Positions 1 through 61,339 of a DNA stretch of 64,000 nucleotides are shown piece after piece. Below the pieces are notes generated by a model, which was not told where the DNA came from, did not search any database, and saw nothing but the letters and a program-made list of their open reading frames with translations. The stretch comes from Basidiobolus meristosporus CBS 931.73 (lineage: Eukaryota > Fungi > Basidiobolomycota): assembly GCA_002104905.1 (NCBI GenBank), contig MCFE01000215.1:1-64000 (forward strand), written 5' to 3'. Position 1 is the first letter of the stretch. Each line of letters begins with the position of its first letter. The position numbers and the translations under genes were made by a program.

Positions 1-1140
1 ATTACCAGAGTCGTAAGCACCAGCTCCGTTGCCACTGTTCTCATCGCCTCTATTACCATTGCCATCTCCATTTCCATTACCGCCGTTGCCGTTTCCAGAG
101 TCGTAAGCACCGGCTCCATTACCACCGTTGCCATTGCCGTTACCGCCGTTTCCGTTACCACCATTGCCAGAGCCATATGCACCGGCTCCATTGCCTCCAT
201 TACCATTGCCATCTCCATTTCCTCCATTTCCATTACCGCCGTTACCGTTTCCAGAGTCGTAAGCACCGGTCCCGTTACCACCGTTGCCACTGCCATCACC
301 ATTGCCTCCATTGCCGTTACCACCATTTCCATTTCCACCATTACCAGAGTCGTAAGCACCAGCTCCGTTACCACCGTTCCCATCGCCTCCATTACCATTG
401 CCATCTCCATTTCCGTTACCGCCGTTGCCGTTTCCAGAGTCGTAAGCACCGGCTCCGTTACCACCGTTGCCATTACCATCACCATTGCCTCCATTGCCGT
501 TACCGCCGTTTCCGTTTCCACCATTGCCAGAGCCATATGCACCGGCTCCATTGCCTCCATTACTATTGTCATCTCCATCTCCTCCATTTCCATTACCGCC
601 GTTGCCGTTTCCAGAGTCGTAAGCACCGGCTCCGTTACCACCGTTGCCATTACCATCACCATTGCCTCCATTGCCGTTACCGCCGTTTCCGTTTCCACCA
701 TTGCCAGAGCCATATGCACCGGCTTCATTGCCTCCATTACTATTGTCATCTCCATCTCCTCCATTTCCATTACCGCCGTTGCCGTTTCCAGAGTCGTAAG
801 CACCGGCTCCGTTACCACCGTTGCCACTGCCATCACCATTGCCTCCATTGCCGTTACCGCCGCCTCCGTTATCACCATTTCCAGGGCCATAGGCACCGGC
901 CCCGTTGCCACTGCCATCACCATTGCCTCCATTTCCGTTTTCACCATTGCCAGAGTCATATGCACCGCCTCCGTTGCCACCGTTTCCATTGCCATCTCCG
1001 TTTCCTCTATTTCCATTACCGCCGTTGCCGTTTCCAGAGTCGTAAGCACCGGCCCCATTACCACCGTTGCCACTGCCATCACCATTGCCGTTACCGCCAC
1101 TTCCGTTATCAACATTTCCGGGGCCATAAGCGCCAGCTCC
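1..1140 (-). repeat. Coding tandem repeat array with a 177-bp higher-order unit
   Basis: GCCGTTTCCAGAGTCGTAAGCACCGGCTCC recurs at 427, 604 and 781 (period 177 bp = 59 aa). Shorter 3/9-nt GN subunits lie between the motifs. Confidence 0.9.
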
Positions 1141-1290
1141 GCTACCACCACTTTCATTCCCTCCGTCGAATAGATCGGTCACGTCGTAAGTTCCACCACT
1201 TCTTGCCTGTAGTCTTCTATCGAAAGCTGCGGCGTTGATTGCAGCCAAACCAGAGAGGAAGCACAAGAATCTGGGTGCGGAGAATTTCAT
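1..1290 (-). CDS. Secreted Gly/Asn-rich repeat protein (3'-partial, runs off the window edge)
   Basis: Manual minus-strand translation from ATG at 1290: MKFSAPRFLCFLSGLAAINAAAFDRRLQARSGGTYDVTDLFDGGNESGGSGAGAYGPGN..., then open to base 1 (430 codons). It has a signal-peptide-like N-terminus, a dibasic RR site, and about 14 GAGAY[DG][SP]G-type motifs separated by GN/GGN/GD runs. It is absent from the ORF track because it has no stop in the window. Confidence 0.88.
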   Translation of the reverse strand, partial: MKFSAPRFLCFLSGLAAINAAAFDRRLQARSGGTYDVTDLFDGGNESGGSGAGAYGPGNVDNGSGGNGNGDGSGNGGNGAGAYDSGNGNGGNGNRGNGDGNGNGGNGGGAYDSGNGENGNGGNGDGSGNGAGAYGPGNGDNGGGGNGNGGNGDGSGNGGNGAGAYDSGNGNGGNGNGGDGDDNSNGGNEAGAYGSGNGGNGNGGNGNGGNGDGNGNGGNGAGAYDSGNGNGGNGNGGDGDDNSNGGNGAGAYGSGNGGNGNGGNGNGGNGDGNGNGGNGAGAYDSGNGNGGNGNGDGNGNGGDGNGGNGAGAYDSGNGGNGNGGNGNGGNGDGSGNGGNGTGAYDSGNGNGGNGNGGNGDGNGNGGNGAGAYGSGNGGNGNGGNGNGNGGNGAGAYDSGNGNGGNGNGDGNGNRGDENSGNGAGAYDSGN

Positions 1291-2509
1291 TTTGTTGTTG
1301 AGAGAGATATGCTGCCAAGTGAGTGTCTTGATCAATTTATACTCACTTCGGAGGAAAGTATGGGGTACCCCACACCCTCCCTTACTGCTCCTTTTTCACT
1401 CCAGCGGTGTCTCAGTAAGCCAAGGCACATCTTGATGAATATGAAATCTGTCTATTGTGTGGACTCAACCTTATTCCCCCGCATTCTTCATACCTGCCTC
1501 CATGTACTTAGATGCATATTTCCCATTGTAACATGCTGCAGCAAATCTTCCGTTGACAGAAAGAAATCCCGCACGTGACCAATCTCAATACACACCCTAC
1601 CTAGATGGAGTGAAGTAGGAAAGGAACAGTTGTCCAACCGCATGTGCCACTGCTTGTTGTTAGGTTTGTTTACAAGGATCTTCTCGGCGAGTAAATATCG
1701 TATTATGTGTGATCCTTCTGCCATCAAAACTCAAACTCCACCGACACCCATTCAGCACACAACATAGAACACTCGCAAAGCAGCCTCATACAAAATCAAG
1801 CTCACCTCTCCCTCACCACTTGGATCACGTAACTACTAACAACAGCCCAAACCAGAAACTACAATCGGATTTCCCCTCAAGTAAGGGAAACCAGCTGTTT
1901 AAGAGCGTGATACATGTTTCAGGGTTAAATCATTTGCCTATTTTCAAGCCAAGAAGAGGTGCTCTCCTTCGTACGTTATCTTGATGAACACGTGTACTTA
2001 TACAAGGTGACGGTTGCTACCAGAGAGGACTCAATTCTAATTAACTGTGCCTGGAGGTTTGAAAGGTGGGAAGATGCTGGACACCATTCAAAATGTGGCG
2101 CCATCATTCAGACGATCCACGAGCTTGCTACCTCAAGAATGATTAACCAAATCTGGGAATTCTTTTGGCATGCAAAACGACTCGCTGGTCAACATTATTT
2201 ACTCAGATCTAGGGGCATTTTCAAGGAGCAATGCTTCGAGTGCTGACGTTCCTGGTGGTCGTCGATGGAGTGTACGCTTGGTCTTCATTTCTGTACTATG
2301 CATTCGCCACTTGCCCGATGGTAGGGATGCATAAGACCATGGTTCAACATACGCTAATCGATTTCCTAGAATATGTTACATAAACGTCACCACTTGACTA
2401 TTTCGTGTCGCTTCCATCGAACCAGATTGATCGGAACAAGGAGCATTTAATTCATGTATACGTGTATCAACATCATCAAATGACAAATAAAGGGGAGATG
2501 GTGGAGAGG

Positions 2510-3150: not shown

Positions 3151-4753
3151 AGGAGAACTTAGTTACTACTTAGGGATTAACTTCTCCATAGACAGAAGTA
3201 CCCAGACTATCACCCTAAGTCAGTCCAAGTATATTCAAGATATACTAAAGAAGTACCAAATGGAAGACTGTAAACCAGCAGCTATCCCAATGGAGACAAA
3301 CCTTAACTTGGTCAAAACTCAACCAAATCAAGAGAGCTTGGTGCCATCTGAAAGCCCTGACTTTCCTTATCAATCTATGGTCGGCAGTCTGATGTATATC
3401 ATGCTTGGAACACGTCCAGATATCTCATATTCAGTGGGAGTTGTCAGCCAACATAATCAGAACTATGGATCTGATCATATTACAGCAGTTGAGTGGATTT
3501 TTAGATACCTAAAAGGAACTGCTGATATCTGCTTAATATACACTTATAAGGACTCAGAAAAGAATCTTGTGGGATACTCTGATGCTGATTGGGGACAAAA
3601 TTTAGAAGACAGAAAATCCACCACAGGATACCCCTTTCTTTACTGTAAAGGAGCAATTTCATGGAATTCAAGAAAGCAACCAACTGTAGCACTTTCTACT
3701 ACAGAGGCAGAGTATATGGTAGCCTGTGAAGCTACAAAAGAAGCAATGTGGCTAAGAAATCTTTTTACAGACTTAGGCCTATGTCAAAAAACACCTATTA
3801 CTTTATTTCAAGATAATCAAGGATGTATACAATTAGGTAGAAATCCAACTTTTCATGCTAGAACCAAGCACATAGATATTAGACATCATTTCATACAAGA
3901 AGCTATAGAGAATAACTTAGTTAGCTTAGTTTACTGTCCTACAGATGAAATGATTGCAGACATATTTACCAAACCATTAGCTAGAGACAAGTTTGAATAT
4001 TTTAGGTCAAAATTAGGACTAGTCAGTATGAACATTTAGCTGAGTGGAAGTGTTGTAAAAACTTGTAATTCCACCTAAATATTCACCTAACTTAGTCACT
4101 TAGATCATCACCTTCAAATCCTAGAGAATACTGACCAAATTCCTTGTCGGGACTTACTTAGAATATTCTCACCAAAATACCAGGTACCCAGAACATGAAA
4201 ATTCTCAGAGTTGTCCAAACAGCCCCAAACTTTGCACGCATGTTCTTTGTGTTGCAATATTCTGAGGAGTATTGGAAGTGATGTGGAGAACTAGAGGATT
4301 TACATGTTATTCACTTGTAGATTTATTGATCAAAAGTATGGTATTTATACTTTTGATAAAGTAGAGGAAACAAACGTGTAGAGTTTGTTAAGGAAGGCCC
4401 CAAGAATATGTGTGCAAAGTTTGGGGTCTTTTGGACGACTTTGAGAAAAATAATAATCTGGGTACCTGACATTTTGGTGAAAATATTCTAAGTAAATCCC
4501 AACAAGAAATCTAGTCAGGACAGTATGCTAATCACAGAATAAGATCTATGTGACTAAGTTAGCATGAATATTTAGGTGACAATTCAATAATTACAACACT
4601 TTGGACCTTCCTTAACCTATTCTACGTGTTTGTAATGCCAAGACCAGGTAAAAGTATAAATACTACTTTTACATTCAATAAATCAGTAAGTGAAAACCAC
4701 AAAATCTAATTGTTCTCCCAATCACTTCCAATATCTCTAAGACTCTTACAACA
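3151..4753 (+). mobile_element. 5'-truncated Copia element: RT end/RNase H (3151-4039), PPT (4041-4050), 3' LTR (4051-4753, interrupted)
   Basis: Near-identical to 60451-61699. RNase H motifs GYSDADW, TEAEY, QDNQG, IADIFTK. LTR starts TGTTGTAA and ends TTACAACA. Confidence 0.95.
4250..4598 (-). mobile_element. Solo LTR (diverged member of the same LTR family) inserted in the 3' LTR above
   Basis: 349 bp, TGTTG..CAACA ends, perfect 5-bp TSD CTTTG at 4245-4249 and 4599-4603. Confidence 0.92.
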
Positions 4754-6695: not shown

Positions 6696-8194
6696 ATGTC
6701 TGAGGAAAACCGCAGAGCTAACGACTCGAGGGATATCGGGTATCCGCCATTTGCCATTTTTTGCACCTTGGTGGCTTGCATTGTAATGTTCTCCAGTGGT
6801 TTCACGACTTCCTCTACCAATATCAGTAAGTGAACTGAGCTGCAGTCTTGTCTGTGCGTTTTATTCATTATTCCTTTTGATTTCCAGCTTCCGACTCCAT
6901 TCTTAATTGTCCTGAAAACAACATGAAGTTGGATGGAAGATTCCCCCACTGTTTCAAAATGGGCAGTTGGTTGTGGGGTTTTGCCGTCGGTAATGCCGCT
7001 CTTGGTGGTATTTTCGGATGCATGTTGGCCGGCTACACTCAAGAGAAGTATGGTCGTCGCCTTTCTATGGTTGGAAACAATTTCTTCTTCGTCTTGGGTG
7101 GTCTTTTGATGGGCTTGTCCATCAACCCTGGAATGTGGATTTGCGGTCGTTTCTTGATTGGTTTCGCTTGCGGTCATGGTGCCGTCATCTTGCCCACTTA
7201 CATCGGTGAGGTCGCTCCCATCAAGACTCGTGGTACTTTCGGTACTTGCAATCAGTTCAACACTGTCATTGGTATCCTTGTGGTTGAATGCATGAGTTTG
7301 GGTATGGCCACCTCGGTCGGATGGAGAGTCTTGGTTGCCCTCGTTGGTGCCTTCGGTCTTGTTCAAGCCATTCTTATGCCCATGTGCGTCGAGACTCCTC
7401 GTTACCTTGTGTCCATGGGTAGAAACGATGAGGCCAAGGTCTCTTTGCAGAAGTTGAGAGGCAACTACGACATTGAAATTGAATTCGAAGAGATTCTTCA
7501 AGCTCGTGAGGCTGCCAAGATGCTCCCCAAGAACCTCAGCGTTGTTGAGATTATCAAGGACAAGCATTGCACTATTCCCTTCATTATTTGCCTCGGCCTT
7601 GGTGCTCTCCAGCAATGGTCCGGTATTAACGGTATTATGTACTACTGTACCTCAATTTTCGGTGAAATCTACCACGACAACGCCAAATACGTTACCGTCG
7701 GACTTATGGGTCTCAACGTTTTCATGACCATTGTTTCCGTCGTCCTCGTCGATCGCTCTGGTAGAAAGTTCCTTCTCCTTCTCTCCAGTGGTGGTTCCGC
7801 CATTTTCAACATTCTCATGTGCGTTGGTCTTCAAGTCAACAACCATGGTTTGACTGTTGCCTCTATCTTCATCTTCGTTGCCTTCTTCGCCGTCGGCCTT
7901 GGTCCAGTTCCTTTCCTCATCATGACTGAGTTGATGCCTACCAACGCCGTTTCCGGTACCACCAGTACTGCCCTCGCCATCAACTGGCTCTCCAACTTCG
8001 TCATTGGTCTCATTTTCCCTGCTGTTTCTGAAGCCATCAACGGATACATCTTCTTGATTTTCGCCGGCTGCTGCGCCGCCGGATTCTTTGGAATTCTCTT
8101 CTTCGTCAGAGAAACCAAGGGCAAGAGTATCGAGGAATTGACCTCCAGAAACAGAGGCGGCGAGGAGTTGAATGACCCTAAGAGAAAGAACTAG
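6696..8194 (+). CDS. MFS sugar porter (GLUT/HXT-like hexose transporter)
   Basis: Sugar-porter motifs YGRR, YIGEVAP..RG, ETPRYL, QQWSGIN, DRSGRK, GLGPVP, ETKGKSIEE. Exon 1 is 6696-6825; intron 6826-6887 (GTAAGT..CAG) joins in frame to the 6923 ORF. Confidence 0.93.
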
Positions 8195-13184: not shown

Positions 13185-13334
13185 TTTGATAGATAATTTT
13201 GGCAATAAGCTTGAAAGAAATTAGAAATGACAACAGAAGACGTCCCTATATTGAGACAGCGAGAAGGCAACCCAAAACAATCAAACTTTATAAGTATGAA
13301 GCGGTTTTTGAATATTACGATATTAGCTTCAAAT

Positions 13335-14114
13335 ATGTTATCTACAGTTGGAATTCTTGGCTCTTTCCTTGCTATCCTCGCCACTGTTCACTCGGCCCCA
13401 GTCGATGGTGGTGCAGATAGCTTGATCCATAACATTGTCTTCAAAAACCAATGCTCACATAATGTTTGGTTGGCATCATCAACTACTTGGGACAATACTC
13501 CCCTTCCTGCCCATGGAGGACTACTCACCCCTGGTGAAACATTCACCATTACGGTTGTAGATCAATGGCAAGGCCGCTTCTGGGGTCGAACGGAGTGCGA
13601 CTTTGAACACAAAAATATGACCACGAATACCGCCTGCAGCACTGGTGACTGCGGTTCAGGTGAAGAGTATTGCGGATACATCTCCGGTAGGCCGCCTGCT
13701 TCTCTAGCCGAGTTTACCTTCAACGGTTGGAACAATCTTGATTTCTACGATGTTTCACTGGTGGATGGGTACAACTTGCCTATCTCCATACAGCCTCACA
13801 CCAAGGTTCCCAATTGGGGCAACCCATACTCGTGTGGAAGTCCCACTGTTGAGAAGGACATCAATCTTATTTGCCCAGGGCCTCTTCAGATCCGTGATCA
13901 CGATGGCAATGTAGTTGGTTGCGAATCCGCATGTAGTGCCTTTGGATTGCCCCAATACTGCTGTTCTGGACCTGACAGCACACCCCAAACTTGTCATCCA
14001 AGCAAGTACTCCAAATTGTTCAAGTCTGCCTGTCCATTCTGCTATAGCTATGCGTATGATGATGCCACCTCCATATTTACTTGCCGTGGCGATTATACCG
14101 TCCAATTTTGTTAA
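13335..14114 (+). CDS. Thaumatin-like (PR-5 family) secreted protein
   Basis: Signal peptide from MLSTVG (ATG 13335), motifs GRFWGRTEC, SLAEFTF, DFYDVSLVDGYNLP, SYAYDD, and 16 Cys. Confidence 0.95.
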   Translation: MLSTVGILGSFLAILATVHSAPVDGGADSLIHNIVFKNQCSHNVWLASSTTWDNTPLPAHGGLLTPGETFTITVVDQWQGRFWGRTECDFEHKNMTTNTACSTGDCGSGEEYCGYISGRPPASLAEFTFNGWNNLDFYDVSLVDGYNLPISIQPHTKVPNWGNPYSCGSPTVEKDINLICPGPLQIRDHDGNVVGCESACSAFGLPQYCCSGPDSTPQTCHPSKYSKLFKSACPFCYSYAYDDATSIFTCRGDYTVQFC

Positions 14115-26184: not shown

Positions 26185-27581
26185 TTATTCATTCACTGAG
26201 TTGTGATTGGTACGAGCCAGTTCAAGGAACTTCTCAAACTCAACTCGAACCTGCTCCGTCACCGCTTCAGCGATCCCTTCCAACCCTTCCGCATCATCCA
26301 TGACACCGGAGATGACCACTTTGTTGTCATAGCTTAGAATTCCCAGCCCCAACGAACCAGGACCTGGAGTGGGTGGGATGGCAATGTAACGGTCGATGGG
26401 TTTCCCTGAGAAGGAGATGCTTTTGCTGGGGCCCGGGACATTGGTCAGAATGGCATGGCATTTCGACATGAACCACTGTACTGGGAATTTGCACAGATAG
26501 TCATTCAGAAACGACAAAGGCGCGACTATCCAACGCACTGCCCATGGTTCGATGGATCGCTTCATCTTTTCCGAGCGGGAGTGTACCTGGTCGATCAGCT
26601 TCACGGGATCCGACGAGGTGATATCGATCGGGAAGAAAGCAATGCCGATCTCGTTCCCGGGGGAAAAATCGTCCGGCTTACGGAGACTCACAGGAACCAT
26701 GTACAGGAAGATCCGATCTTGTAGCATGTCCTTACCAAGAAGATGGTTCCGGAGGGCCAAATTGAGTATCGTGATCAACACGTCGTTTACGGTCGCATTG
26801 TATGTACGTCTGATGAACTTGATCTCCTCAAGCGAGATGTCATCCGACCAGTAGACCCTCTTCTTAACTGGCTTTCCGTGCGTTGGCTGTAATGATTTCC
26901 GCTGGAACACCGCAATCTGAGAGATCTGTACCACTTCCCAGAGTAGCATGTATATGAATCCCAGGATTCCCATGAGCACGTCTAGTACCCTGGCAAAATC
27001 CCCTCGGGGTTTTTGGTCCCCACGTGACTTGGAGCTGTATCGTAGCTCTGGCCCGGCGGAGGTGATGCTCAAGAGGCAGTGAATGAAGCCGATCCCGTCA
27101 CTGATGGTATGGTGTGCACGCACTAAGGAACGAAACGGAATGGTCAGCTCCCTTCATATTATCAAACCAACTTCCACTTACCTATGACTACACAGCCACC
27201 AGTTTCCAAGCCCTCAATGACGTGAGTTTGCCACATAGGCTTTTTGAGGTCGAACTCACGCGAGTATATCTTGGAAGCGAACTCGGTCACCTCTTTCTTG
27301 CCGGAATTCTCCAAGGTTACCCACTCGATGTGCTCCGAGAGCTCAAACTCTTTGTGATCAACCCAAACCTTTCTAAACCGAGATTCTTCTTGTACGACTT
27401 GACGGAACTTCGGGAACTGTTCTATCAAGTGTTGGTGTTGCTTCATCACTTGCTCCCTGTCCAGAGGCTCGGAGAATTCCCAGATGGACATGACCGTGGA
27501 AGGTCTTTGAGGCTCGTTGAGTTTCAGGTAAAGGTTGTCCATGCCATTTAGCACGGAGCTTTGGGATGCTTTTGTGTCCAT
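26185..27581 (-). CDS. Wax ester synthase / diacylglycerol acyltransferase (WS/DGAT)
   Basis: Catalytic HHTISDG motif, PMWQTHVIEGL, C-terminal TNVPGP. Intron 27181-27123 joins the two track ORFs. Confidence 0.9.
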
Positions 27582-31410: not shown

Positions 31411-34400
31411 TTGACCAGTTCCCCCCTTTGCATATGTAAAATAATGTTCAGACAATTCCCTTCCACGAATACTGTTCATCGTACCGAAAGGTATTTGCCT
31501 AAACTTCTTTTCTTGGTCAACAAATGTCAAAGCAGGCCGCGCTTGTATCAACGGGCGTTTTCAAGCAAAACCCCTTGCCTATTCCCAGTAGAAACCTCCA
31601 TTAACAACGTCAGCTCCAACAAAACTCTACTTACCACTTTCAAAAACGCTCTTCTTCGCCAAGATGTGAACACTGCTTGGATCGTCTTCAACCAACTAGT
31701 GAAAATGAATGAGGAGCGTGCTATCACCTTCAACCAATATTCCGACCTTCTACACCTAATCAACAAGTCGGGCTTCGATCTCGCTAAAGGCTCGAAGATT
31801 ATCGAATACATGGAGAAGATCGGTGTACAATATAATTCTCAGTTGGGCTACACCCCCATAGCCTCCTTCTATGCAAACCATGGGAAGAGCTCCCAAGTAG
31901 AAACCATCCTTTCCGATATGCTGGCCCGGAAGGTGCAGGTGAACCAGGTGTTTTTCAATCATTTGATTGCCGCTGCGGGGAAGGTCAGCATCAATTCAGC
32001 GTTGCATTATTTGCAAAAGATGACCGAGATGGAGATCCCGCCGAATGTGGTATCTTACAACACGATTCTGTCGTGCTGTAAAAGTCACCGCAATACAGAG
32101 ATCCTCGAGGAGGTGCTCCGTAGCATGAAGGAGAGATCGATAGATTTCGACAAATACACATACAAGGCTTTGCTTGATATTTACGCCATGAACCGGGATA
32201 CCGCCAAGGTTTTGGATTTGTATCATGCTCTAGAGAAAAACGAACATCTTCTTTTCCACCCGCAGATCAGGCCGAAATTGATCGATGTATTGTCAAAGGC
32301 TGGTCAGACAAAGTCTTTGCAAAGCATGTATCAGCTGATGCTGGAGCATGAAGTTCGTGTAGATGCTGGCCTGTACAACGCACTGATTTCTGCTTATAGC
32401 TCGTCATCGCAGACAGACAAGGCGGTGAAGGTGATGCAAGACATGCTCAAGAAGGGTCTTCAGCCTCCTGCCAGAGCGTGTAACATGGTCATCCAGAGCT
32501 ACGTATCCAAAAAGGCCATCGGAAAGGCCAGCTCGTTTTTTCAACAGTTGAAGCAGGCCAAGGTCAAGCCAGATGCCACTGGCTACACTGCCATGATCAA
32601 TGGGTACATACAGGCTGGGGATTTTTCGAATGCTGAGCTGCTTGTTGCTGAGTTGACGAGTGATAATAAGCCGCCCAATGTGCTCACGTATGGTGCCCTG
32701 ATCGATGGCTATACAAAGCGCGGGAAGCTGTCTAATGCATTGGATTTACTTCAATCCATGAAGGATAGCAGCGTTACACCCAACACCTTTATTTACACGA
32801 GTTTGATCAACGCTTATATGAAGCAGTCCAAAGTCGACGAGGCCATGGACCTGCTTCGTGACATGCTTGCTATGGGCGTGCGGCCTAACACTGTTACCTA
32901 CAACGTCCTGATCAACGGAGTTCTTCGCATTTCCAAGCCTCAGAAAGCATTCGAGATATACAAGCAAATGGGTGCTGCAAACGTCGCTCCTAATTGTAGT
33001 ACCTTTACTGTGCTTCTGCAAGGTCTGGCCAGAGGGAAGAGGCTGGCTCTGATCCAAGATCTTCATCACGATATGATTCATGGCAACACAAAGCTGGACA
33101 AGATGGCTTATGATTCTCTGCTATCTGCCTACTCCTTTATCGGGCGAAAGGCCAACAAATCCCTGCTTCAAGCTTACGGTGATATGCAAAGTGCGGGCTT
33201 TACCCCCAACGCCCTAAACTGCAGCGTTCTCATCAAGTGTTTTGTCGAAGAACTCGAAGTAGACAAGGCGTTCGACGTATACCAAAGTATGGTCAAGTCA
33301 GGTTATGCACCCACTTCCTCGGACTGCAACGCACTCATCCAGAGTTGCGGCCACAATAATGGACTGGACAAAGCACTGGAGGTCTACAGTGCCATGATCA
33401 AGCAAGAGCACTCGCCAACCCCCTACACTTATGCTGTCCTGATTAGTATGTGCGCCAAGCACAGGCGTTTGTCTAAAGCCATGGAGTTCTATCAAAGTAT
33501 GCTGGATCGTGATATCAACCCTACCACTTTTGTGTACAACTCTCTTGTAAAAGTCTGCGCCAGCCACAACAATTCCGAGGAAATCGCGAAGCTGCTACAG
33601 AGCATGAAGCAACGCAACGTCTACCCGGATGTGGCAACCTATACACTGCTCATTGATCATTATGCCAAGAACTCCAACATGCCCAAGGCCCTTGAGATTT
33701 ACGACCAGATGTGCCAGACAGACATCGAGCCTAATACGATCACCCGAACTGTCCTAGCCAATGGGTTTTTGAAGAATAACCAAGCGGAGAAGGCGACCGA
33801 AATACTGGAGACGATGGTTTCTACTGGTGCCCGGCCTGATCTATATACCTACTCGAGTTTAATCAATGCATACTGCAAGAGCTCCAGGCTTGCAGAGGCC
33901 CTGCTGAAGTACCAAGACATGCTGGATGATGGATACCAACCAAACGCTGTTCTGCTGAACACGCTGATGGACAGCTTCGGCAAAAATCACGACCTAGAAC
34001 ATACACTAGCCATCTATAGAGACATGAAGTCGTGGGATATCGCGCCCACCGTCCAGACCTACAATATTCTAATGAACGCTCATCTTATCAACAACGACCC
34101 TGCAAAAGCACTCGAGTGGCACGATGCCATGGTTAAGAGCAACGTCCAGCCCAACCAGTTCACCATTGCTATTCTGATGAATTGTCACAACTACCAGGGC
34201 CAGCTCCAAGAGGTGTTCAACCTATGGAATGCGGAGAAGTCGAATCTCTTCCATCCGGACAGCCAACCTAGCGGGGCGATCTCTGTTTTGCTAGACGCGT
34301 GCGGCCATAATGACGACATCACGCGGCTGAGGTCCACCTGGGCAATGCTCAAGAAGGAGGGCTATCGTTTGACGTCGAACAACCTGGCCGCCTATGTGGA

Positions 34401-34632
34401 GGCGCTTTGCAGACTGGGCTGCCACGATGAAGCGTACGAGCAATTCGAATCGCAAATCCAAGAGCTCAACATCACCCCTGACATCAAACTATGCAGAACC
34501 ATCACTGCGGCATTCATTCAGGACCAAAGGACGGGCCAAGTCCGACGGATACGGGATTACTTGACGGCGGAATACCCACATCTGCTACAGGAGCTCACCC
34601 GTGACGAGTGGTTCCAAAAGCAACCCTTTTGA
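31411..34632 (+). CDS. Large pentatricopeptide-repeat (P-class PPR) protein, probably mitochondrial
   Basis: Intronless, roughly 20 or more tandem 35-aa motifs (PNxxTYxxLIxxY..G...A..L...M...G). Basic N-terminal presequence; likely ATG at 31444. Confidence 0.95.
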   Translation: MTSSPLCICKIMFRQFPSTNTVHRTERYLPKLLFLVNKCQSRPRLYQRAFSSKTPCLFPVETSINNVSSNKTLLTTFKNALLRQDVNTAWIVFNQLVKMNEERAITFNQYSDLLHLINKSGFDLAKGSKIIEYMEKIGVQYNSQLGYTPIASFYANHGKSSQVETILSDMLARKVQVNQVFFNHLIAAAGKVSINSALHYLQKMTEMEIPPNVVSYNTILSCCKSHRNTEILEEVLRSMKERSIDFDKYTYKALLDIYAMNRDTAKVLDLYHALEKNEHLLFHPQIRPKLIDVLSKAGQTKSLQSMYQLMLEHEVRVDAGLYNALISAYSSSSQTDKAVKVMQDMLKKGLQPPARACNMVIQSYVSKKAIGKASSFFQQLKQAKVKPDATGYTAMINGYIQAGDFSNAELLVAELTSDNKPPNVLTYGALIDGYTKRGKLSNALDLLQSMKDSSVTPNTFIYTSLINAYMKQSKVDEAMDLLRDMLAMGVRPNTVTYNVLINGVLRISKPQKAFEIYKQMGAANVAPNCSTFTVLLQGLARGKRLALIQDLHHDMIHGNTKLDKMAYDSLLSAYSFIGRKANKSLLQAYGDMQSAGFTPNALNCSVLIKCFVEELEVDKAFDVYQSMVKSGYAPTSSDCNALIQSCGHNNGLDKALEVYSAMIKQEHSPTPYTYAVLISMCAKHRRLSKAMEFYQSMLDRDINPTTFVYNSLVKVCASHNNSEEIAKLLQSMKQRNVYPDVATYTLLIDHYAKNSNMPKALEIYDQMCQTDIEPNTITRTVLANGFLKNNQAEKATEILETMVSTGARPDLYTYSSLINAYCKSSRLAEALLKYQDMLDDGYQPNAVLLNTLMDSFGKNHDLEHTLAIYRDMKSWDIAPTVQTYNILMNAHLINNDPAKALEWHDAMVKSNVQPNQFTIAILMNCHNYQGQLQEVFNLWNAEKSNLFHPDSQPSGAISVLLDACGHNDDITRLRSTWAMLKKEGYRLTSNNLAAYVEALCRLGCHDEAYEQFESQIQELNITPDIKLCRTITAAFIQDQRTGQVRRIRDYLTAEYPHLLQELTRDEWFQKQPF

Positions 34633-55821: not shown

Positions 55822-57363
55822 AACCTATGGTCCATTATTATGTAGCATAAATCCCTCCATTTTAGCTATTGTCCTATTTGCAGATTCTGTTGTAAGAGTC
55901 TTGGAGATATTGGAAGTGATTGGGAGAACAAGTAGATTAGGTGGTTTACACTCAATGATTATTGAATGTAAAAGTAGTATTTATACTTTTACATGGTCTT
56001 GGCATTACAAACACATAGAATAGTTACAGAAGGTCTCAAGAGCATGTGTTCAAAGGTTGGGGCTGTTTGGACACCTTTGAGAATTTTCATGTTCTAGGTA
56101 CCTGGTGTTTTGGTAAAAGTATTCTAAGTAAATCCCAACAAGGAGTTTGGTCAGTATACTGTAGGATTCAAAGGTAATGATCTAAGTGACTAAGTTAGGT
56201 GAATATTTGGGTGGAATTACAAGTTTTTACTACACTCCCACTCAGCTAAATGCTCATATTGACTAGTCCTAATTTGACCCAATATATTCAATCTTGTCTC
56301 TAGCAAATGGTTTGGTAAATATGTCAGCAATCATTTCATCTGAAGGACAGTAAACTAAGCTAACTAAGTTATTCCCTATAGCTTCACATATGAAATGATG
56401 TCTAATATCTATGTGCTTAGTTCTAGCATGAAAAGTTGGATTTCTACCTAATTGTATACATCCTTGATTATCTTGAAATAAAGTAATAGGCATTTTTTGA
56501 TATGGGCCTAAATCTGAGAAAAGCTTTCTTAGCCATATTGCTTCTTTTGTAGCTTCACAGGCTGCCATCTACTCTGCCTGTGTGGTAGAAAGTGCTATGG
56601 TTGGTTGCTTTCTTGAATTCCATGAAATTGCTCCTTGACAGTAAAGAAAGGTGTATCCTGTGGTGGATCTTCTGTCTTCCAAATTTTGTTCCCAATCAGC
56701 ATAAGAGTATCCCACAAGGTCTTGTTCTGAGTCCTTATAAGTGTATCTTAGGCAGATATCAGCAGTTCCTTTTAGGTATCTAAAAATCTGCATAACTGCT
56801 GCAATATGATCAGATCCATAGTTCCAATTATGTTGGCTGACAACTCCTACTGAATATGAGATATCTGGACGTGTTGCAAGCATGATATACATCAGACTGC
56901 TGGCCATAGATTGATAAGGAAAGTCAGGGCTTTCAGATGGCACCAAGTTCTCTTGATTTGGTTGAGTTTTGACCAAGTTAAAGTTTGTCTCCATTGGGGT
57001 AGCTGCCAGTTTATGTTGTAAAAATTCGTATTTTCCACCTAAATATTCACCTAACTTAGTCACTTAGATCATCACCTTCAAATCCTAGAGAATACTGACC
57101 AAATTCCTTGTCGGGATTTACTTAGAATATTTTCACCAAAATACCAGGTACCCAGAACATGAAAATTCTCAAAGTTGTCCAAACAGCCCCAAACTTTGCA
57201 CACATGTTCTTGGGACCTTCCTTAACCTATTCTACGTGTTTGTAATGCCAAGACCATGTAAAAGTATAAATACTACTTTTACATTCAATAAATCATTAAG
57301 TGAAAACCACATAATCTACTTGTTCTCCCAATCACTTCCAATATCTCCAAGACTCTTACAACA

Positions 57364-57375
57364 GGTTATGAGCCC
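57364..57375 (+). promoter_or_regulatory. Primer-binding site GGTTATGAGCCC (complement of the initiator tRNA-Met anticodon arm)
   Basis: Immediately after the 5' LTR; repeated at 62163-62174 in the third copy. Confidence 0.88.
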
Positions 57376-57394
57376 CGAGCTGTCACTCTCTGCA

Positions 57395-60300
57395 ATGTCT
57401 ACTACTGCTATTACTGGAATTTTTCCCTCTGCTGAAAAGTTGGATGGATCTAACTACCAAGTGTGGAAGGTGAAGATGAAGATGCTGCTACAAGAAAGAG
57501 GCCTTTGGGATATTGTCATGGGAGAAGAATGCCCTCCTAAAAACGTGGGAGAGGAAGCCTTAAAGTACCAGAAGAAAGAACAAAGTGCCTTTAACTGCAT
57601 TTGCCTTAATGTCAAGGACAAATTGCTAATTCAATGCTCAAGAGCAAAAACGGCAAAGAATGCCTGGAAGGCATTAGAAGACACCTACCAGTCATGTTCA
57701 GCTGCCAAGAAAATGTATCTGAGAAGAAAATTCTTTACTACAAAGATGCTGCCAGGAGAAGAAATGAAAAATCTAATTAACAGAATTACCCTGCTGGTAG
57801 ATGAGATGGAATCTGTGGGCGTACCAACTACTGATGAGGATGTGATAGTTACCATCCTGAATAGCCTGACAGACGAGTTTCAGGGCCTTGTATCAGCCCT
57901 AGAGTCCAGAACTGAAGATTTGACCTTAAATTACGTATATGGAAGGCTCCTGGATGAAGAATTAAGAAAATCAAGCGCTAATAAGAAGGAAGAAGAAAAT
58001 GCTTTAATAAGCAATGATAGCCAACAAAGGAGATACCCAAGACCCTACAAAGGCAACAGCAACCTGTTTTGTAGCTACTGCAAAAGGAAAGGACACACAT
58101 CAGACCGGTGTCTCAAAAAGAAAGATAATCAGCAAAAGAAGCCTGAATATGGAAATGCTGCAACAACTGAAGATAGACTATTCATATCTGCACTAAATAT
58201 GACCACAAACAAGGATTCTCAGACGTGGTATATTGACTCTGGAGCTTCTCAACACTTTACACACCAAAAAGAACTTTTTACCCAATATCAAGAAATTCCA
58301 ATTAAGAAGGTTTTCATGGGTGACGATAGAACACTTGATGCAGTGGGAGAAGGAACTATCCAAGTAAACCTTAGAAGCAGTGAAGGAAGCCATACACTGA
58401 CCTTTAAAGAAGTACTCTATGTACCAGAAATAGCCAAGAACCTACTCTCTGTAAGCAAGGCCACAGCAGAAGGACTCAGTCTCAGTTTTGACAATTCTGG
58501 ATGCAGGATCACTGATCAAAATGGTGCCCATATTGCTTCGGGCATCAGAGATCAGAATCTATACAAGTTGACTTATATTCCATCATATTTGGAAGCCAAT
58601 ATAAGTAACTTAAATGAAGAAACACCAATGCTTTGGCACAGGAGATTTGGACACATCAATTTTGATTATTTGCGTAAAATGATCAAAGATCAGCTAATTT
58701 CTGGAGTGAAAATTGATCCCCCAGCTAATTTGGAGCACTGTGAAGCCTGCATATATGGGAAACAAGCCAGACAACCGTTCAAGAGCTCTGGGTTAATCAA
58801 AACTAAGAAAAAATTAGATCTAATTCACTCAGATCTGTGTGGACCTATGCAAAATTTATCCTTAGGCGGGATGAAGTATTTAATCACTTTTATTGATGAT
58901 TATACAAGATACACATGGGTCTACTTCATGGAGAGAAAGGAAGAAGCTCTGTCTAAGCTCAGGGAGTTTAAAGCCATGGTGGAGAGAGAAACTGGTGAAA
59001 AAATCAAGAAAATACGCTCTGACAATGGTGGAGAATATACCTCAAAACTCTTCATCCACTTCTGCAAAATTCATGGGATAAAGCAAGAGACTACTGTACC
59101 ATACTCCCCACAGCAAAATGGAGTAGCAGAACGAGCTAACAGATCAATAATTGATATGGCAAGATCTATGATCCATGATCAAAAATTATCCTATGATTTT
59201 TGGGCGGAATCAGTTGCCACTGCTGTATACCTTAAAAATAGGAGTTATAACAGAATACTTCGTGATTCTACTCCATTTGAAGCATGGTATGGATACAGAC
59301 CAAGTGCAGAACATCTAAGAATATTTGGGTGTACAGCATATGCCAAAAAACTGGCCGGAAATCAGTCAAAATTTGAGCCAAAAAGTGTAAAATGCATATT
59401 TTTGGGCTACTGCAATGAGAGTAAGGCATACAGACTCTACAATACCGAAGCAAAGAAGCTTATCAAGTCCAGGGATGTGTTGTTTGATGAAAATTCAAAA
59501 TTTTCACAAAAAATGACATCAGATGATGACGAAAATTTGATCTCAAGTCCACCAATTGTCAGGATTGAATCAGAGCAAAACAATGAAAATTTTTTCACTC
59601 CAGAGGACTCTACAACCGTGGTTCAGCCAGAATCAGTGCCCAGGAATATCCCAGAAGTGATCATTCCAGTATCAAATGCCCGGAGATCCAATTGGACAAG
59701 AAATAGCCCAAATTACTATATCAATGAGGGTACAAACTTAGCCTATGCCTATTCAGTCCATGTTGATGAACCCCAGACTGTAAAAGAGGCCCTAAATAGC
59801 CCTCAGACAAAGTTTTGGAGATCTGCAATGACTGAGGAATATCAGGCACTGATGGAAAATCAAACTTGGGACTTAGTCAAATTACCAATCAACCGAAAAT
59901 CAATTGGATGCAGATGGGTCTTCAAGACAAAATACAAGGCTGATGGTACAATTGAAAGATACAAAGCAAGACTTGTAGCCAAAGGATACTCTCAAACAAA
60001 AGGACTTGACTATACTGAGACCTTTGCACCGGTAGCCAAGTTTAATTCCATCAGATTAATATTGGCTATTGCAGCCAAATATAAGTTTTTTATTCATCAA
60101 ATGGATGTAAAAACTGCATTTTTGAATGGAGAACTTGATGAGGACGTGTATATGGACCAGCCTGATGGGTTTGTTGACCAAGATAACCCCCATTTGGTCT
60201 GCAAGCTTAAAAAGTCACTATATGGTCTCAAACAATCACCAAGAGCCTGGAATTGCAAGATAGATTCTTATTTGGAATCTTTGAGTTTCAAAAGGAGTAA

Positions 60301-61339
60301 TGCTGACTATAGTATATACTATAAGCCAGATAGAGCAAATCCAGTTCTATTAGCTCTATATGTGGATGATCTTATTATAGCCGCCAATAACCTAGAAACA
60401 TTGGAAGAGACTAAATCCAGCCTATCTAAGGAGTTCAAGATGTCCGATCTAGGAGAACTTAGTTACTACTTAGGGATTAAGTTCTCCATAGACAGAAGTA
60501 CCCAGACTATTACCCTAAGCCAATCCAAGTATATTCAAGATATACTAAAGAAGTACAAAATGGAAGACTGTAAACCGGCAGCTACCCCAATGGAGACAAA
60601 CCTTAACTTGGTCAAAACTCAACCAAATCAAGAGAGCTTGGTGCCATCTGAAAGCCCTGACTTTCCTTATCAATCTATGGTCGGCAGTCTGATGTATATC
60701 ATGCTTGGAACACGTCCAGATATCTCATATTCAGTGGGAGTTGTCAGCCAACATAATCAGAATTATGGATCTGATCATATTGCAGCAGTTAAGCGGATTT
60801 TTAGATACCTAAAAGGAACTGCTGATATCTGCTTAAGATACACTTATAAGGATTCAGAACAGGATCTTGTGGGATACTCTGATGCTGATTGGGGACAAAA
60901 TTTAGAAGACAGAAGATCCACCACAGGATACACCTTTCTTTACTGTAAAGGAGCAATTTCATGGAATTCAAGAAAGCAACCAACCGTAGCACTTTCTACT
61001 ACAGAGGCAGAGTATATGGCAGCCTGTGAAGCTACAAAAGAAGCAATGTGGTTAAGAAAGCTCTTTACAGATTTAGGCCTATGTCAAAAAACGCCTATTA
61101 CTTTATTTCAAGATAATCAAGGATGTATACAATTAGGTAGAAATCCAACTTTTCATGCTAGAACCAAGCACATAGATATTAGACATCATTTCATACGTGA
61201 AGCTATAGAGAATAACTTAGTTAGCTTAGTTTACTGTCCTACAGATGAAATGATTGCAGACATATTTACCAAACCATTAGCTAGAGACAAGTTTGAATAT
61301 CTTAGGTCAAAATTAGGACTAGTCAGTATGAACATTTAG
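57395..61339 (+). CDS. Copia Gag-Pol polyprotein (single frame)
   Basis: Zn knuckle CSYCKRKGHTSDRC, protease DSGA, LWHRRFGH, integrase HSDLCGP/DNGGEY/GVAER, RT QMDVKTAFLNG/YVDD, RNase H. Likely start is MSTTAIT at 57395. Confidence 0.96.
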   Translation: MSTTAITGIFPSAEKLDGSNYQVWKVKMKMLLQERGLWDIVMGEECPPKNVGEEALKYQKKEQSAFNCICLNVKDKLLIQCSRAKTAKNAWKALEDTYQSCSAAKKMYLRRKFFTTKMLPGEEMKNLINRITLLVDEMESVGVPTTDEDVIVTILNSLTDEFQGLVSALESRTEDLTLNYVYGRLLDEELRKSSANKKEEENALISNDSQQRRYPRPYKGNSNLFCSYCKRKGHTSDRCLKKKDNQQKKPEYGNAATTEDRLFISALNMTTNKDSQTWYIDSGASQHFTHQKELFTQYQEIPIKKVFMGDDRTLDAVGEGTIQVNLRSSEGSHTLTFKEVLYVPEIAKNLLSVSKATAEGLSLSFDNSGCRITDQNGAHIASGIRDQNLYKLTYIPSYLEANISNLNEETPMLWHRRFGHINFDYLRKMIKDQLISGVKIDPPANLEHCEACIYGKQARQPFKSSGLIKTKKKLDLIHSDLCGPMQNLSLGGMKYLITFIDDYTRYTWVYFMERKEEALSKLREFKAMVERETGEKIKKIRSDNGGEYTSKLFIHFCKIHGIKQETTVPYSPQQNGVAERANRSIIDMARSMIHDQKLSYDFWAESVATAVYLKNRSYNRILRDSTPFEAWYGYRPSAEHLRIFGCTAYAKKLAGNQSKFEPKSVKCIFLGYCNESKAYRLYNTEAKKLIKSRDVLFDENSKFSQKMTSDDDENLISSPPIVRIESEQNNENFFTPEDSTTVVQPESVPRNIPEVIIPVSNARRSNWTRNSPNYYINEGTNLAYAYSVHVDEPQTVKEALNSPQTKFWRSAMTEEYQALMENQTWDLVKLPINRKSIGCRWVFKTKYKADGTIERYKARLVAKGYSQTKGLDYTETFAPVAKFNSIRLILAIAAKYKFFIHQMDVKTAFLNGELDEDVYMDQPDGFVDQDNPHLVCKLKKSLYGLKQSPRAWNCKIDSYLESLSFKRSNADYSIYYKPDRANPVLLALYVDDLIIAANNLETLEETKSSLSKEFKMSDLGELSYYLGIKFSIDRSTQTITLSQSKYIQDILKKYKMEDCKPAATPMETNLNLVKTQPNQESLVPSESPDFPYQSMVGSLMYIMLGTRPDISYSVGVVSQHNQNYGSDHIAAVKRIFRYLKGTADICLRYTYKDSEQDLVGYSDADWGQNLEDRRSTTGYTFLYCKGAISWNSRKQPTVALSTTEAEYMAACEATKEAMWLRKLFTDLGLCQKTPITLFQDNQGCIQLGRNPTFHARTKHIDIRHHFIREAIENNLVSLVYCPTDEMIADIFTKPLARDKFEYLRSKLGLVSMNI

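Follow-up and report, generated by a model that had tools for sequence, protein, structure and literature searches.

A hidden Gly/Asn repeat gene with regularly spaced tyrosines in Basidiobolus meristosporus, candidate for an extracellular matrix protein

What would a fungus do with a long protein composed mostly of glycine and asparagine, and is the gene for such a protein real? Both questions are raised by one end of a window of 64,000 nucleotides (the whole stretch of DNA analysed here, positions 1 to 64,000 of contig MCFE01000215.1, assembly GCA_002104905.1) from Basidiobolus meristosporus CBS 931.73, a frog-gut fungus. A preliminary description, made from the letters of the sequence, had placed a hidden gene on the minus strand there and supposed its source to be fungal. 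The source of the DNA bears out the second of these claims, and the open frame, together with a test of codon positions, bears out the first: judged on these, the minus-strand repeat gene is a genuine coding gene of B. meristosporus. The features of the locus are collected in Table 1.

The minus-strand frame is open from an ATG at 1290-1288 to position 1 of the window, and this ATG, in the context AACAAAATG, is the first in-frame ATG downstream of an in-frame stop. The length of an open reading frame (ORF) is by itself weak proof in this sequence, since several frames across the repeat are almost without stops and the plus strand has a 353-codon ORF of its own. The test that carries the argument sorts by codon position the nucleotide differences between repeat units of the same length, in pairs that are not independent of one another. 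Read in the minus-strand frame, the differences number 38, 55 and 102 at codon positions 1, 2 and 3, and the codon differences divide into 80 synonymous and 79 non-synonymous. The two remaining sense frames gave synonymous/non-synonymous counts of 8/149 and 10/134, and the frame of the plus-strand ORF gave 37/120. The excess at third positions and the synonymous differences are thus particular to the minus-strand frame, which argues that this is the frame that codes; owing to the dependence between the compared pairs the argument is a qualitative one, yet it singles out that frame. The plus-strand ORF was rejected as a gene on the same test and is regarded as an antisense shadow of the repeat.

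The array is remarkably narrow in its chemistry, with only 11 amino-acid types in 386 residues (Gly 48.2%, Asn 25.6%, Asp 7.5%, Ala 6.7%, Ser 5.7% and Tyr 3.6%) and one Val as the sole aliphatic hydrophobic residue noted; Pro makes up 0.5% of the repeat protein, whose commonest pentapeptides are NGGNG, GNGGN and GNGNG. Tyrosine is the sole aromatic residue of the repeats and occurs once in every 23-31 residues. All 14 units terminate in [G/E]xGAY[D/G][S/P]GN, within which 13 of the 14 Tyr motifs match G[AGT]GAY[DG][SP]G and the remaining one reads EAGAYGSG, while none of the 14 departs from G-A-Y or from the G-N that comes after it. The earlier estimates of about 14 such motifs and of more than 370 residues of mostly Gly and Asn therefore proved sound. 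Beneath the constant peptide the codons vary synonymously, with Ala encoded by GCT, GCA or GCC, Tyr by TAT or TAC, Gly by GGA, GGC or GGT, and Asn by AAT or AAC. Tandem Repeats Finder resolved the same region as a period of 84 nt in 10.8 copies and as a period of 177 nt in 4.4 copies with 88% matches. Two adjacent super-units of the longer period, each 59 residues, differ by one nucleotide, pointing to recent tandem duplication and expansion of the array. A tblastn search of the 64-kb window found no second copy of the repeat protein.

Ahead of the array stand a predicted signal peptide and a short non-repetitive box, and it was these that provided the link to another species. An HMMER scan of 1.84 billion representative proteins returned five matches, the best at 43 bits, and among them one true homologue, Basidiobolus ranarum KAK9709718.1 (K7432_008854, a hypothetical and partial protein of 96 aa). 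Its identity to the window protein is 51% over 41 aa by BLASTP (E value 1e-13) and 62% over residues 1-51 by phmmer. Both proteins have the same signal peptide layout and the same box, of pattern R-x-L-x-A-R-x-x-G-x-Y-D-V-x-D-x-F-x-G-G, and in the alignment the relative keeps the order of YGxGN followed by GAYD[S/T]GNG on Gly/Asn spacers. It differs in the 51-62% range of its N-terminal identity, in having RQ in place of RR and in its Gly-richer spacers. Since K7432_008854 stops at the end of its contig, its C-terminus is not given, and it may be described as a homologue that is either an orthologue or a paralogue. The four other HMMER matches (a bacterial beta-helix repeat protein, a Rhodotorula protein with an NG string and two junk repeats) are compositional and were rejected as relatives.

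The preliminary description had also assigned the protein a signal peptide and a possible Kex2-type RR site. The first of these is supported by a signal-peptide-like start with Kyte-Doolittle windows above 2, by small residues at -3 and -1 of the putative cleavage site and by the conservation of the layout in B. ranarum; cleavage would probably follow the AAA that ends at residue 22. The second stands in part, in that RR is present, but the sole relative has RQ there, so that the dipeptide is not conserved, and it is R-x-L-x-A-R, not RR, that the two N-termini have in common.

Other searches were blank. There was no Pfam family in the visible 430 residues, no match among PDB sequences and no match in the ESM Atlas, in agreement with the earlier remark that the visible part held no recognisable enzyme or binding domain. 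A word-index protein search, in an index covering proteins of 236-752 aa, gave no match for the whole 430 aa or for residues 1-62, and a scan of JGI metagenomes with an alignment of the N-termini produced 313 pattern matches, none of which was confirmed. That the word-index blanks are not an artefact of composition filters follows from a local phmmer control, which recovered the protein itself and copies mutated at 30-50% of positions, and did not recover shuffles. As a self-match would score hundreds of bits and the best score obtained was 43, the window product must be absent from the public collection searched, and is hence unannotated; to this extent the gene is indeed hidden. Both known copies, that of the window and that of B. 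ranarum, are cut at the end of a sequence, as is expected of repeats that break assemblies. On the evidence of these searches, the protein family is known so far from the genus Basidiobolus and appears confined to it.

The physical character of the visible mature part is that of a strongly charged, hydrophilic chain, with 37 acidic residues against 5 basic ones, a net charge of about -32, an isoelectric point (pI) of about 4.05 and a grand average of hydropathy of -1.35. An AlphaFold model (single sequence, no alignment) had a mean predicted local distance difference test score of 32 and no secondary structure, which is weak evidence of disorder. From one Gly to the next the spacing is 2 in 118 of 179 steps, 1 in 40 and 3 in 8; a collagen-like or polyglycine-II reading was rejected because the spacing is mostly 2, and not 3. 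Within the same part Asn-Gly occurs 90 times, and N-x-S/T sequons number three. Asn-Gly is the dipeptide most prone to deamidation, being converted to Asp or isoAsp in hours to days (PMC11659308). Asn-Gly at this density would imply either a protein that does its work for a short time, or one for which progressive acidification belongs to the function.

What, then, might such a protein be for? The reading we put forward, tentatively and at a little under an even chance, is of a genus-restricted, disordered and polyanionic protein of the extracellular matrix or wall, in which tyrosine "knots" on Gly/Asn springs would take part in an elastic or sticky network. Secretion, disorder, cross-linking and a role as a material are what we infer here from the anatomy of the protein and its analogues. 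The repeat protein would enter the secretory pathway via its N-terminal signal peptide and leave the cell, and the mature product would be an intrinsically disordered, strongly acidic polymer whose long Gly/Asn stretches could serve as hydrated, flexible spacers and entropic springs. The Tyr of the invariant GAY(D/G)(S/P)GN would provide evenly spaced points for cross-links or stickers, whether oxidative (of the dityrosine type) or non-covalent, and the outcome might be an extracellular network, i.e., an elastic or sticky gel of the wall or spore surface. Two places in the life of the fungus are candidate sites. One is the tip of capilliconidia, where adhesive material is found in Basidiobolaceae (PMC13370150), and the other is the wall of the apparatus that discharges the spore, since Basidiobolus shoots off its conidia from a conidiophore under pressure (PMC2528943).

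Several points weigh against this reading. Tyrosine, at 3.6%, is sparse next to known adhesives, and chains with so large a negative net charge would resist associating with one another if it were not screened, e.g., by Ca2+. Rauscher et al. (2006; cited in PMC8786786) are reported to have formulated a rule of Gly and Pro content that separates elastomers from amyloids, under which a sequence nearly free of Pro would be placed close to the elastomer zone or beneath it. The C-terminus lies beyond the window and may hold a folded domain, a glycosylphosphatidylinositol (GPI) signal or a lesion that disrupts the frame with a stop. A truncated copia insertion is situated 2 kb away, the gene is not called in the public annotation, and the evidence of conservation comes from one partial relative.

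Secreted Gly-rich repeat polymers with spaced tyrosines underlie animal elastomers and the reinforcement of plant walls, and it was as silk- or resilin-like that the protein had originally been described. In composition and architecture the likeness is apt, but it does not extend to kinship, as there is no sequence match, Pro is close to absent, (GA)n blocks are missing and a chitin-binding domain was not seen. The heavy-chain fibroin of Bombyx is built of GAGAGS and GAGAGY blocks, the ends of which resemble the GAGAY pentapeptide. By comparison, the window protein has GAGAY once per unit and no (GA)n runs, it is dominated by Gly/Asn and not by Gly/Ala/Ser, with little Ala, and no homology to Bombyx fibroin was found. 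Resilin is a disordered, Gly-rich, dityrosine-linked elastomer with one Tyr per repeat (PMC7794388), and insect pro-resilin (Drosophila CG15920; repeats GGRPSDSYGAPGGGN and GYSGGRPGGQDLG) is, like the window protein, secreted, disordered and formed of Gly-rich tandem repeats with one Tyr per short unit beside Asp, Ser or Gly. Where the two part is that the pro-resilin unit has Pro at 2 of 15 residues, whereas the window protein is nearly without it, has 26% Asn, is far more acidic and has units twice as long. No arthropod or resilin match was found among the 1.84 billion representatives, Pfam or PDB sequences, nor did Pfam detect a chitin-binding (R&R) domain in the 430 visible residues, the C-terminal part being beyond the window.

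Outside the animals, Tyr-containing glycine-rich wall proteins of plants form peroxidase-dependent networks (PMC5302738), and those of class I, such as bean GRP1.8, similarly follow a signal peptide with a Gly-dominated array that has scattered Tyr. They differ in their GGX/GGGX repeats, in which Gly can reach 70% and Asn is scarce, compared to the acidic Basidiobolus protein with its G-x/GG pattern, 48% Gly and 26% Asn, and as no plant match was present among the 1.84 billion representatives, the likeness is an analogy only. Within the fungi, the AGL/IDP surface proteins of Glomeromycotina are lineage-restricted, secreted intrinsically disordered proteins (IDPs) with Gly/Pro-rich or Gly/Asn-rich tandem repeats and have been proposed to be elastic or amyloid (PMC8786786); like the window gene, such tandem-repeat IDPs are difficult to assemble and to annotate. 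The differences are again substantial, in that the Glomeromycotina proteins belong to another phylum, have no detectable homology to the window protein, are short and often GPI-anchored, and have no regular Tyr motif described (PMC8786786). A last parallel is found in molluscan nacrein/N66, in which a Gly-Xaa-Asn domain (Xaa being Asp, Asn or Glu) binds calcium (PMC6599672). The NG-repeat of these proteins is likewise an acidic, low-complexity stretch of Gly, Asn and Asp in a secreted protein, but it has a period of 3 and not 2, has no Tyr motif, is of animal origin and lies inside a carbonic anhydrase, a domain that Pfam did not find in the visible repeat protein.

Of the explanations that compete with a matrix or wall polymer, the one that makes most of the missing C-terminus sees the array as a mere stalk or flexible spacer within a larger wall protein, and would assign the function to a module at the C-terminus beyond the window, be it a Cys-rich domain, a GPI anchor or an enzyme. 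It has precedents, since a secreted Rhodotorula protein (P0002) places an NG string before a Cys-rich tail and the Gly/Asn-rich surface proteins of Glomeromycotina are frequently GPI-anchored (PMC8786786). We regard it as unlikely, though by no means negligible, because 386 or more residues with an invariant, regular Tyr motif, itself kept in the B. ranarum relative, are more ordered than a passive linker requires. The acidity of the protein could instead be its purpose, if Asp-studded Gly/Asn strings bind water and Ca2+ to form, with no covalent cross-linking, a polyanionic hydrogel or a mucilage that binds cations, one that would hydrate spores or hyphae, or buffer cations in gut and dung, and whose charge would rise with time as Asn-Gly is deamidated. 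Such a role would draw on the same excess of acidic residues, low pI and 90 Asn-Gly dipeptides described above, on the rapid conversion of Asn-Gly to Asp or isoAsp (PMC11659308) and on calcium binding by the Gly-Xaa-Asn domain of nacrein/N66 (PMC6599672). It leaves the invariant Tyr motif without a role, however, and the Gly spacing of the window protein is mostly 2 as opposed to the 3 of Gly-Xaa-Asn. In addition, we know of no mineralisation in Basidiobolus, and a mucilage seems to us rather unlikely. A silk-like or functional-amyloid beta-sheet, in which alternating Gly-x strands with Asn ladders stack into fibrils, would have in its favour the 118 of 179 Gly-to-Gly steps in which one other residue intervenes, an alternation like that of (GA)n silk, and the association of GN-rich sequences with amyloid properties in the literature (PMC8786786). 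Against it stand the Gly content of 48%, the frequent interruptions by GG, the net charge of about -32 and the lack of a hydrophobic face, of any (GA)n run beyond the single GAGAY and of strands in the AlphaFold model, and we consider it improbable.

It could also be asked whether there is a functional gene here at all, and not an expanding minisatellite beside transposon debris or a pseudogene broken downstream. The truncated copia copy 2 kb off, the absence of the gene from public annotation, the nearly stop-free state of other frames of the repeat and the two near-identical super-units, which speak for an unstable array, would all suit such an origin. They are met by the third-position bias specific to the minus-strand frame, by an intact start, TATA box and signal peptide, and by the conservation of the N-terminus and motif in a second species, and this possibility is to our minds highly improbable. 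Finally, the RR downstream of the signal peptide might mark a Kex2-processed precursor that releases many small peptides, a scheme that is scarcely credible given that there are no dibasic sites between the units, that the other basic residues are the single R95 and R414 and that RR is replaced by RQ in B. ranarum. This reading, that of a Kex2-processed repeat protein (KEP) with dibasic KR or RR between all units, was rejected.

If the protein is indeed a matrix or wall polymer, its interest lies in the biology of its host. We are aware of no description of a protein material of this kind from zygomycete fungi, and we know of no molecules behind either the firing of Basidiobolus spores or its sticky secondary spores. 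A family known from one genus, broken by assemblers and skipped by annotators, is a concrete candidate for that firing or stickiness. Were it a real material, it would widen the range of known protein elastomers and adhesives by a design free of Pro and rich in Asn, and would show the extent of the lineage-specific surface biology that is hidden in low-complexity sequence; were it only a linker or mucilage, it would be an ordinary low-complexity wall protein. A bolder version of the proposal, which we consider decidedly doubtful, is that Basidiobolus invented a protein rubber or glue, made of a family of tyrosine-knotted Gly/Asn polymers, that is oxidatively cross-linked outside the cell and in which some 90 Asn-Gly per 400 residues act as a deamidation clock. 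The cross-linked material would in that case account for the mechanical properties of the elastic conidiophore wall or of the adhesive tip of capilliconidia, and the clock would shift charge, swelling and stickiness within hours to days after release. Such a fungal elastomer or adhesive would have converged on resilin, and would be the first to have its ageing programmed.

Table 1. Features of the repeat gene and its immediate surroundings, in window positions and, where applicable, residues of the minus-strand product.
Feature	Residues	Window positions	Strand	Detail or basis
Coding sequence		1..1290	-	430 codons without stop; 5' end complete, 3' end beyond window edge
Predicted signal peptide	1-22	1225..1290	-	K2 and R7, hydrophobic core 8-18, AAA 20-22
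Non-repetitive N-terminal box	23-44	1159..1224	-	Alignment with B. ranarum relative
RR dipeptide	25-26	1213..1218	-	Proposed Kex2 site; RQ in B. ranarum relative
Gly/Asn repeat array	45-430 (386 aa)	1..1158	-	14 tandem units of 23-31 residues
Two adjacent 177-nt (59-aa) super-units	169-227 and 228-286	433..786	-	Pairwise unit comparison
TATA-like box TATAAAT		1335..1341	-	-51 to -45 from ATG; consensus match only
Antisense ORF		177-1238	+	353 codons; His/Arg/Cys-rich product; shadow of repeat

The remainder of the window holds a varied set of genes and elements. Closest to the repeat gene, 2 kb from its start, is an ORF of 259 aa (3260-4039, plus strand) that is a 5'-truncated copia copy with 95% amino-acid identity to residues 1109-1367 of the polyprotein at 57236-61339, and it is followed by AT-rich debris resembling long terminal repeats on to about 6000. 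The polyprotein itself (plus strand, 1367 aa) is of the copia type and apparently intact, with gag, integrase, RVT_2 and an RNase H tail. A monosaccharide transporter is encoded in two exons (6696-6803 and 6902-8191, plus strand), both of which match ORX94038.1 of B. meristosporus CBS 931.73 at 100% identity and so confirm the species, and five more copies with 88-97% identity are present on other scaffolds of this strain, from which it appears that the genome holds many recent duplicates. Further along on the plus strand are an ORF of 295 aa of the thaumatin (PR-5-like) family (13227-14114), the product of which is probably secreted, and an intronless ORF of about 1070 aa (31411-34632) with 17 strong PPR_2 repeats (Pfam E value 3e-140), which is unusually plant-like for a fungus. 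Between these two, on the minus strand at 26185-27123, lies an ORF with a WS_DGAT_C domain (the C-terminal domain of wax-ester synthase/DGAT), a family whose best-known members are bacterial and plant proteins.

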